From Octopus bimaculoides (taxonomy: Eukaryota): 64,000 nt of DNA. The DNA is taken from the NCBI RefSeq assembly GCF_001194135.2, contig NC_068987.1:95807615-95871614 (forward strand), read 5' to 3'. The notes beneath the pieces are model-generated. The model made no database searches. It saw only the letters and a program-made list of their open reading frames with translations, and was not told where the DNA came from. This document shows, piece after piece, positions 46,301 through 49,300 of the stretch. Every line of letters starts with the position of its first letter. The stretch's first letter is position 1. The translations under genes were made by a program, and so were the position numbers.

Positions 46301-49300
46301 TTAGATTGTTCATCATCACATTTGACTATATAATTCTTAATCTCCTATAGATGTCTCAATTAGTGCAATGTTCTACAAAAGTCAATTTCACTGGGAAACT
46401 TTGAACTCTAGATTCTAAACTCAACTCCCCAGGGCTTCTGGTCCCATATGTTGTTTCAAATTACTTTATCACCAGTCTATTATCTATCCATATTCTTTGA
46501 TTAGTAATCTATACACTTTTTATTGCAGGTACTGTTCTGATATGAGAAATAATATACTCAAAAAATATACAATTTTTTTTTTATTTGGTTGTAAATGAAT
46601 ACTTGTAATTTTTTTGTTTGTAATTTGTTTCTTTTTTATCCAAAGTGAAGCATTAAGTACAGTGAATTCCAACTATATTATTTCTAGATTTTGTTACACT
46701 GGTTGCATGGAATCTCCCCACCCTTCTAACCCTTTGTACTGAAGTTTTCTTTCTTTTCTTTTTTTTTTCTTTTCTTTTTTTGGTTATAAACTAGTGTCTG
46801 GGTTGTTATGATTGAGATAAGAATTTAGCTTGAATAAGTTCGTTAGCTGTATATTGGTGGTAGTTGAATGTGCTGCAGCCAACCTGGAAAGGAAGAGTTG
46901 TAAAGCTCAGGTGGGGTGGTAACATTTACATGAGAAGCAGGAATCTAGACATGAGAAACACTTAAACTGTTATTCTTTGAGTGCTGTTTAGCTTCATGTC
47001 CATTCTGATTAAATAGATCTGTAATGAAAGGTATTCTAGTTGTGACCATTCTACCTAGGAGTACATTATCTTCTGTGTCCTTTTATTTTTCTAAGACAGC
47101 GAAGTGTGATTTAAGGGAAGTTTGGCTGCTATATCTAAGCAGCCAAGCAAAGATAAATGCTTTTTCATTGGTTTGTTGTTGGCTGGTGTAAACCGGCAAA
47201 TCATATTGAATCCTCTAACGAACAAAACTTTGCCTTTGCAACTATCTATATTCTGCCTAAGCAAAAGACCATAGTATTGGAACCAATTTTCCACCAGTAC
47301 ATTCACTAGTATGATACTGATTTTAAAATAATTGCTTTTGAATTAATTCATCAGTTGAGAAAAGCATGAACATCACACATTCTTTTCTTTTTCCCTAAGC
47401 AATATGCTTATGTTAGAAATCGTTATTAGTTATACCCTAAGACACTGAGTATTATTTCTTTGGCTTATTCCAAACTTATACATCAATAGAGGCAGTTTGT
47501 CACATACTCAAAAAAAAAAAACAAAAAAAAAAACAGCCTTTCTCTCCAAATGCTGATGTGTGCAATCATCATGCTGATATTCAGTAAGGTTGTCTGTAAT
47601 TATAATGTTTAATTAAAACAGATATCAAAACATTTACTCCTGCCATCTAATCAAGTTTATAGGTAACTGAACAGGGAAGTACTTTTCAAAGATGTTTATA
47701 ACCAAAGAAATATTTTTCACCCCCAATTGTAGAATATTTTATTGAGACTATTTAGAAGCTCTCCATTTTGACTAAAACTAATTTCTGCTATGATCCCTGC
47801 AGCCAGTGTAAAATATAGTATTTCTGTCGTTAGCTGGTGGTTGTGACCACCTTTATGACATCCATGGATTTAGGTTTTGCTTTGCCATTTACTTGATATG
47901 CTTGTATGCCCATGTTTGTCTAGGGATCAGTCATACAGTCGTGCGTCCTCACTGTGCTACGGCGCTCCTCCTACTGCGTCACACGTCTCCTCCGCACACT
48001 ATCTACCACCAGATACTTCTGCTACACACCAATCATAGTCAGCCGCATGATCTGCGTCTTCGATCTGGCATTCCGTTGTCTCCAAACAGTACAACTCCAT
48101 TCCTGGACGACCTACTGCGTCTCACTTTCCACCGAGTTACAAACTCAGTGTTGCTGAGTGACTGACCCCTGCTCTCTGCGGAGACTACCAAAGACACCAA
48201 ATGCTACAGTTGTCAGTCGTCTGTATATGTTATCCTAGACCAATTGTAACGGCTCTCCGAAGACTAGACTCCACATCTACATCTGACCAATCCAATTCTA
48301 CATCTGTCACCAGTTTACTACTACTACCACTACTACTACTACAACAACCGTACTCATTAACCTAGACCAATTCTTTCGAACCAGCCCTCGATTGAGGAGT
48401 CCGAAGGCCATCAACCCTAGCCCTCTCCTCTCATACCAACATGTGTAGGTGCAACACATGGCACCTTTTACGTGATATTATTCGACTGACCAATGGTCAA
48501 TCCCTGACCACGCAATATAACCTCTCCTGCTGGTTTCATTTTCACAAAAGTCACGTCACCTAGTATTGGGACTATGTACTAGGCTAGTTGCTTGTCCTCG
48601 TAAGTAACGTTCATTTTGGCCCTGTTCCTCAGCACACCGCAGCCAGCATAGAACTATGTGACAATAGTTTTTTTCCTCTTTTTTTTTTATTTTTTTTTTT
48701 TTTACATATATATTCTTTTACTTTGCTATATGCTAAACTGTTTGCCTAACTTTCTTCCCTGCAAGCAACTTAATACTTAAACCATATTCTTCAAACTGCT
48801 CTATTCACTACTGTGTATTTTCAGTGTTTACTCTCGGTTCCAAAGTGTTTCCTGTGTTTAGTTTTCAATTAATTGCACCTTTTTACCAGTTTTGTTTGTG
48901 TTTAACTTGTGTGCAACTCCTAGTGTCAGCTCCTTGTCTTCCTTTGATAGAAATTAAAACTAAGCTAATGACCCTTGATTGCTAAACTGTTGCATTTTCT
49001 TTTAGTCTACTATTGTGTTTTGTATGTTAGGTAAGTGACTAATGCAAAGACAAAGTAAAAACTATCATAGCTAGGTTGGTGTGTCTGGGCACCTGTGATA
49101 ATTCTAGCATGCATCATATTTAATGTAAATTACTTTGGATGCAGCCAGCTTTGACATACTTTGTACCAAATGCAAGTTTAGAAAGGAAAGATTGAACAAA
49201 CTGCTGGATATTCCAGATTTTTGCTCAAAAACAAAATTGACTACTGCCTTGATCAGTTACAGCCATATTACATTGTTGTTATATAAATTTGGTTTTGTAT

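Follow-up and report, generated by a model that had tools for sequence, protein, structure and literature searches.

Poison exons are the main means by which SR splicing factors steady their own levels, and those of vertebrate SR genes rank among the most conserved sequences known; the RNA recognition motif (RRM) of the SRSF3 type prefers C-rich binding sites. Such exons are already textbook knowledge and a specialist would expect one in an octopus SR gene. To our knowledge, however, they are little documented beyond vertebrates, flies, worms and plants, and our literature searches found no report of an SR poison exon in molluscs or cephalopods. Here we analyze a 64,000-nucleotide (nt) stretch of the Octopus bimaculoides genome (contig NC_068987.1, positions 95,807,615 to 95,871,614, hereafter the window, whose own coordinates are used throughout). 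On its + strand lies an SR gene of the SRSF3/SRSF7 family with a single RRM, recognized by tblastn, sequence reading and translation, and a C-rich block at 47924-48599 within an intron of this gene is read by us, with somewhat more confidence than doubt, as an alternatively used poison cassette exon.

The closest described system is exon 4 of SRSF3 (SRp20) in human and mouse. SRSF3 drives the inclusion of its own exon 4, which brings in an in-frame stop and gives a truncated protein without the RS domain (PMC7544984). Like this exon, the octopus block is a candidate cassette of several hundred nucleotides lying between the RRM/linker exons and the RS exons of a single-RRM gene; both contain an in-frame stop that predicts a product lacking the RS domain (SRSF3-TR in mammals), and both are pyrimidine- or C-rich. 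They differ in that the octopus gene is part of a separate 'RVEHARP' clade and shares only about 50% identity with SRSF3 over the RRM, that the mammalian exon is ultraconserved whereas the octopus block has no detectable conservation against bivalve relatives, and that inclusion and autoregulation are proven for SRSF3 exon 4 but predicted for the octopus block. The poison cassette of SRSF7 (9G8) follows the RRM exons, as does the octopus block, but the octopus protein lacks the CCHC zinc knuckle. Among invertebrate SR genes, Drosophila Rbp1, x16 and B52 and the Caenorhabditis elegans rsp genes have the kind of stop-introducing alternative splicing that is proposed here for the octopus gene (PMC4379411). 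More generally, SR genes are widely subject to unproductive splicing, which is flexible in evolution: it is kept for long periods while its exact form and sequence are replaced; that work (Lareau and Brenner 2015) documents the SRSF4/5/6 lineage and does not mention Lottia or Capitella (PMC4379411).

Splice signals, frame and predicted fate of the candidate exon

The block and the signals around it are listed below.

47876..47923, + strand: candidate 3' splice site, with a 48-nt AG-free zone, a last 20 nt that is 70% pyrimidine, a branch-point-like TTGAT about 27 nt upstream and the acceptor tctAG
47924..48599, + strand: candidate poison cassette exon of 676 nt (3n+1), C-rich and CpG-retaining, with stops in three frames (sequence, segmentation and composition)
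48036..48038, + strand: first in-frame stop, TAG, 37 codons past exon 3; the predicted product has 150 aa from the ATG at 4250 and no RS domain
48600..48605, + strand: candidate 5' splice site, CTC/GTAAGT (sequence)
48953, + strand: ATTAAA, 3' of the block
49031..49036, + strand: second GTAAGT, which would give a 1107-nt exon with the same stop

The block sits 6.4 kb into intron 3, between exon 3, which encodes the linker, and RS exon 4. The original prediction, made by a model from the letters alone, had an AG completing the phase-2 Arg codon of exon 3, and this holds: the acceptor AG occupies 47922-47923, and with G 47924 the codon CG/G, left open where exon 3 ends at 41547, is complete. The frame and count given there (37 codons to TAG 48036, a 150-aa RS-less product) are likewise correct, as is the placement between the RRM/linker exon and the RS exons known from the SRSF3/SRSF7 poison cassette, here the exon 3/exon 4 intron. 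The candidate acceptor matches the acceptors of exons 2 and 6 in pyrimidine content and AG-free zone. Each forward frame of the block contains 6-8 stops. GTAAGT occurs 8 times in the 20.7 kb scanned; given intronic densities of 2.3 acceptor-like sites and 0.78 GTRAGT per kb, the joint chance of finding an acceptor at the left edge and a GTAAGT near the right edge is estimated at roughly 0.5-1%. Judged by these motifs, both ends of the block appear to carry competent splice sites.

When the block is skipped, exon 3 would join exon 4 at 60936 and the full SR protein would be made. With the block included, translation continuing from exon 3 would meet TAG 48036, and more than 560 nt of the cassette together with all RS exons would become 3' untranslated region, with several junctions past the stop (at least three exons follow TAG 48036 in the inclusion transcript). 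With several exon junctions downstream of the stop, the inclusion mRNA would be a target of nonsense-mediated decay, and any transcript escaping decay would encode the 150-aa RRM protein without the RS domain. Autoregulation by the protein is proposed by analogy with SRSF3 exon 4: the gene's own SR protein would probably bind the C-rich exon and favour inclusion of this exon, thereby limiting the protein's level by negative feedback. We also considered a downstream RS-only open reading frame (ORF) starting in the block and rejected it (the last stop is at 48580 and no ATG follows). An RS-only half protein of the SRSF7-like Split-ORF type is not predicted in octopus, since no reading frame opened by an ATG in the block continues into the RS exons.

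The host gene and its protein

The exon model of the host gene is as follows.

4250..4395, + strand: coding part of exon 1, from the ATG to the donor CAG/gtaaga; first RRM half up to WVA(R), ending in phase 2 (tblastn, sequence, translation)
38932..39009, + strand: exon 2, phase 2 at both ends, with a split Arg on both sides (tblastn, sequence, translation)
41434..41547, + strand: exon 3, RRM end and linker, ending GGHWR + CG; donor CG/gtatgt, phase 2 (sequence, translation)
60936..60992, + strand: RS exon 4, 57 nt, phase 2 at each end, the first exon 3' of the block (RS-frame scan; its start ATCCGGTTCT is homologous to the RS start ATCAGGCTCA of contig L001, described below)
61282..61329, + strand: RS exon 5, 48 nt, phase 2 at each end (RS-frame scan)
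62211..62660, + strand: RS exon 6, 450 nt, donor AG/gttagt (sequence reading)

The tblastn queries, human SRSF3 and SRSF7, matched the two RRM halves at about 4289-4396 and 38888-39025. RS exons 4 and 5 were found by scanning for RS-rich frames and have clean splice sites; the introns of the gene are in phase 2 throughout. RRM exon 3 and its frame stand as in the original prediction, which may have missed these two small RS exons (60936-60992 and 61282-61329). Since they precede 62211, the host intron 3 spans 41548-60935 (19.4 kb) and does not end at 62210. No further exon was identified 3' of RS exon 6 before the window ends at 64000.

Spliced together, exons 1-6 encode an N-terminal RRM (RNPPGFAF) followed by an RS-rich tail. 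The N-terminal 113 aa show 48-51% identity to human SRSF3 and SRSF7 and 69-74% identity to three bivalve-type proteins, namely P0003 of Mactra antiquata, P0005 of Mya arenaria (which carries the name 'arginine/serine-rich 6') and P0002 from a Logan contig. The protein matches bear the names SRSF7-like, SRSF3-like, 'arginine/serine-rich 6' and RNA-binding protein 1 (Rbp1), and the Pfam domain is RRM_1. The octopus protein falls in the separate 'RVEHARP' clade, whose signature begins GGYR[IV]F.GDLG. The closest knuckle-bearing relative is a hemichordate protein, the SRSF7-like P0006 of Glandiceps, which has this clade signature including RVRVEHARP and also a CCHC zinc knuckle; such a knuckle is absent from the octopus protein and from the bivalve-type P0002, P0003 and P0005. 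Sharing of the signature with a knuckle-bearing protein suggests that the octopus gene may be an SRSF7-type gene that lacks the knuckle. For the well-conserved RRM the best protein match reaches 74% identity at most, and the collections searched therefore seem to hold no close relative for this gene.

Composition and edges of the block

The block has a GC content of 0.48, 214 C against 110 G, and 26 CpG, with a CpG observed/expected ratio (o/e) of 0.75 against 0.22 for the whole of intron 3, in agreement with its earlier description as C-rich and CpG-retaining. Its composition is close to that of coding exon 6 (GC 0.48, CpG o/e 0.73). No other 700-nt stretch of true intron is exon-like; the final segment of the scan, which begins at 61848 and has an o/e of 0.61, reaches into RS exon 6. 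Such exon-level CpG retention within a CpG-depleted intron may be taken as indirect evidence of constraint on the block. The C-over-G skew of 0.32 is the strongest among the CpG-holding segments of the 64 kb, and this strand bias suggests constraint on the transcribed strand.

Two-boundary maximum-likelihood segmentation places the left edge at 47928 (+/- about 25 nt) and the right edge at 48647 (range 48640-48667). By this estimate the left compositional edge coincides with the acceptor AG. On the right, the segmentation leaves one further feature outside the candidate exon.

48600..48647, + strand: C-rich, CpG-holding continuation past the donor (segmentation)

This continuation may be a donor-proximal intronic element.

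Motifs and short repeats within the block

Several short sequence features recur in the block, or recur elsewhere in the gene.

47930..47945, + strand: RS-exon-6-like start GTCATACAGTCGTGCG, a 14/16-nt match to the exon 6 start GTCTTACAGTCGTTCG in the same codon phase, with SYSR in both
47942..48121, + strand: four TGCGTC (47942, 47975, 48053 and 48116), each with a retained CpG, two of them inside a 15-nt repeat, CCTACTGCGTCWCAC
48029..48494, + strand: six CCAAT (48029, 48240, 48287, 48292, 48367 and 48490), four of the six as GACCAAT and two inside a 16-nt repeat, TTAWCCTAGACCAATT
48316..48342, + strand: (TAC)9 microsatellite (Tandem Repeats Finder), the same as the ACTAC run

The original prediction had pointed to a run of ACTAC/ACAAC and to AGACTAC. 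The run is present as the (TAC)9 microsatellite and AGACTAC occurs once, but the argument built on them, that the block carries 9G8/SRp20 motifs known from systematic evolution of ligands by exponential enrichment (SELEX), fails a composition-aware test. Against the expectation from a first-order Markov model of the block, WCWWC occurs 20 times where 14.2 are expected (z = 1.5), with nine of the 20 in the microsatellite run; CNYC has z = 0.4; and the single AGACKAC compares with 0.2 expected (p = 0.14). The densities of WCWWC and CNYC are 3.4-3.5 times those of the intron (3.5 for WCWWC), an excess that is due to the base composition of the block, as the z values of 1.5 and 0.4 indicate. GAY-repeat sites of SRSF7 show no enrichment in the block.

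Two other words are over-represented in the block, ACCAAT and TGCGTC, neither with a known binder. On the + strand of the block CCAAT occurs six times against 0.63 expected, and its density in the rest of the intron is 0.76 per kb; the longer ACCAAT, with an expectation of 0.21, occurs five times (p = 3e-6; Bonferroni-corrected for 4096 hexamers, about 0.01). For TGCGTC the counts are 4 against 0.15 (p = 1.7e-5 before correction). The two direct repeats that contain some of these words, TTAWCCTAGACCAATT and CCTACTGCGTCWCAC, are each present twice.

The match at 47930-47945 is the sole one on the + strand of the window with three or fewer mismatches to the exon 6 start; its positional p is about 5e-4 in a post hoc test. 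The remainder of the block is unrelated to exon 6 (whole-block p = 0.28).

The acceptor sequence TTTGTCTAGG (47915-47924) can form seven perfect base pairs, GTCTAGG/CCTAGAC, with the core of the 16-nt repeat at 48234-48243 and again at 48361-48370. In the RNA, such pairing might hide the 3' splice site; the block, when folded, shows no excess stability (z = -0.18), so the idea stays speculation. A zinc-knuckle remnant was also sought in the block and rejected, as no frame contains a CCHC pattern.

Comparison with relatives in other animals

Two relatives allow the same intron to be compared. The first is L001, a 1120-nt Logan contig from run SRR28036163 that encodes P0002, a gene of the same clade with 74% identity over the RRM region. 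Its order is spliced RRM exons, a non-coding insert of about 410 nt and RS coding sequence, and the insert sits exactly between the homologues of exon 3 (...CG) and exon 4 (A TCN GGN TC); the RS coding start ATCAGGCTCAAGG is homologous to the octopus exon 4 start ATCCGGTTCTGAT. A stop lies about 28 codons into the insert, which has a GC content of 0.43, a C skew of 0.20, a CpG o/e of 0.71 and one CCAAT, and which starts with GTACAG and ends with GGCAG after a weak pyrimidine tract. Whether a cassette or a retained intron, this is stop-introducing splicing of the same intron.

The second is the Mactra antiquata locus L002, in which intron 3 is about 19 kb long (exon 3 at 29663-29768, exon 4 near 48985). 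A scan for C-skewed, CpG-retaining segments in this intron gave a single block, 40022-40389 (368 nt), with the edges ...ctattcag/G and CAG/gtattc, a GC content of 0.42, a C skew of 0.24, a CpG o/e of 0.77 and a stop 11 codons after exon 3. From these features it is a candidate poison cassette in the homologous intron. The block is not part of P0003, the sole product recorded here for that gene. The same intron also contains a skew-free CpG-rich stretch at 35400-36400 (o/e up to 1.6), and the region 48600-51800 around the small RS exon 4 is CpG-rich as well; within it a blastn match recurs every 170-340 nt or so (49339-51731), which suggests a tandem array.

Other loci add little. L007, an SRSF7-like locus of a fish, is compact; its intron at the linker/knuckle-RS boundary measures 147 nt, and the locus is uninformative on cassettes. 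The contigs that carry P0008 are intron-less metagenome fragments.

The octopus block, the L001 insert and the Mactra block appear to share composition and not sequence. No k-mer is jointly enriched in the three after correction, and the words they have in common, GACGACCTACT and CACTACCTT, are not significant. On the question of shared ancestry or convergence, which the original prediction had left unsettled, the comparison leans towards sequence turnover. A fuller reading can be put together from these observations, in which the block is an old, lophotrochozoan-wide autoregulatory exon of a knuckle-less SRSF7-like clade whose position (intron 3) and composition (C-skewed, CpG-retaining, 370-680 nt) were kept between bivalve-like molluscs and octopus while its sequence was wholly replaced, the octopus copy having been partly rebuilt from the RS exon start (the 14/16-nt SYSR match) and acting through GACCAAU, UGCGUC and two acceptor-masking CCUAGAC; taken with all its parts, we consider it improbable.

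If the octopus exon is verified, then together with L001 and Mactra it would mean that in the SRSF3/7 branch one and the same intron has remained a site of unproductive splicing in very distant animals, with the exon sequence fully turned over. This would extend the 'conserved yet flexible' pattern, which the SRSF5 branch has hitherto exemplified. CpG retention at the level of exons, combined with strand bias, may also help as a signature when such exons are sought in the CpG-depleted introns of unannotated genomes.

Weighing the alternatives

Several observations weigh against the poison-exon reading. The original prediction had GTAAGT closing the block, and although this hexamer is found at 48600 and again at 49031, the composition of the block overruns the first of them by about 48 nt, and the exonic side of that donor (CTC) is poor. 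SR-protein SELEX motifs are not above what composition predicts. The searched collections contain no transcript or protein of octopus or a near relative for this gene, and the predicted 150-aa product, compared with 5.8 billion proteins, found RRM-level relatives alone, with its tail uncovered. For the L001 insert, retention of a short intron is an alternative to cassette inclusion. Aligned locally or globally, the octopus block, the L001 insert and the Mactra block, which come from very distant species, score no better than shuffled sequences. Finally, the CCAAT excess would also be compatible with a regulatory sequence acting at the DNA level. The block would in that case be an island unmethylated in the germline, for instance an enhancer within the intron or a promoter (internal or antisense), with NF-Y on its CCAAT boxes and splice-like signals that are incidental. 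The six CCAAT within 676 nt would then be explained, GACCAATGG is a good NF-Y-type site 110 nt upstream of GTAAGT, and CpGs are retained amid a CpG-poor gene body. Yet all CCAAT but one lie on one strand and C exceeds G by 2:1, which a symmetric protein-binding island would not be expected to show. At 6500-7600, where the window is truly CpG-rich and island-like (o/e 1.2-1.5), C and G are not skewed in this way, and a CpG o/e of 0.75 fits the coding exons of the gene and not an island, for which a value near 1 or above would be expected. The left edge, moreover, coincides with a full-strength acceptor, and a promoter within the block would find no ATG-started frame leading into the RS exons. 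A DNA-level role is thus unlikely.

CpG retention would also be explained if the block were selectively neutral and had been inserted recently, whether as a low-copy repeat, as a retroposed fragment or as a segmental copy, so that its CpGs are not yet lost. Its first 22 nt resemble the start of RS exon 6 and might be a copied fragment, and GCAGCCAG occurs as a weak direct repeat on either side of the region (47800 and 48640). However, the similarity to exon 6 does not extend beyond the 16-nt stretch, and chance alone is expected to produce a flanking repeat of 8 nt within 950 nt; beyond this match no terminal inverted or long terminal repeats are present. The original prediction had itself named a multicopy transposon or long terminal repeat as the finding that would speak against it; in the 64-kb window, where other repeats recur many times, the block is present just once. 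Neither strand has a suitably placed poly(A) tail, no tRNA or tRNA-like head was found, and Rfam gave no match on 46500-50000 at a permissive threshold or on the whole window at the gathering threshold. The three forward-frame translations found no match among the 5.8 billion proteins, which also makes an origin as a mitochondrial insert, processed pseudogene or transposon ORF less likely, and exact look-ups of two ORFs inside the block were without match; no ORF of an inserted element was found. We regard a neutral insertion as decidedly unlikely. The block might, lastly, be transcribed without being an SR cassette, as an alternative terminal exon or as an exon of a separate non-coding or antisense transcript. 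The ATTAAA at 48953 and a long T-rich stretch after the block (48668-48703) could serve a terminal exon, for which the same 150-aa product is predicted, and the strand bias says merely that one strand matters. Against this, there is no AATAAA or ATTAAA within 350 nt downstream of the block end, a perfect donor stands at that end, and the minus strand of the block has no ORF or other recognizable feature that would speak for an antisense exon. Use in another transcript therefore seems very improbable, and a poison cassette exon remains our preferred explanation of the block.

Other features of the window

Intron 1 of the gene contains a near-perfect palindrome at 7260-7454, whose 86-nt arms are complementary at 98% and enclose a loop of 23 nt. 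The palindrome holds telomere-like CCCTAA/TTAGGG pairs and lies within the stretch 6500-7600, the most CpG-rich of the window; it may be a foldback element or an unmethylated island. A repeated translated element is present in at least seven places and on both strands, at about 575-700, 21908-22070, 32045-32404 (minus strand), 32961-33100 (minus), 35018-35383 (minus), 42492-42921 (minus) and 63880-64000, and several of its copies adjoin runs of N that mark assembly gaps. Decayed transposase-like frames are found at 32423-33476 on the minus strand, with Tc1/mariner-like text, and at 23030-24143 on the + strand, which by eye is pogo/Tigger-like.

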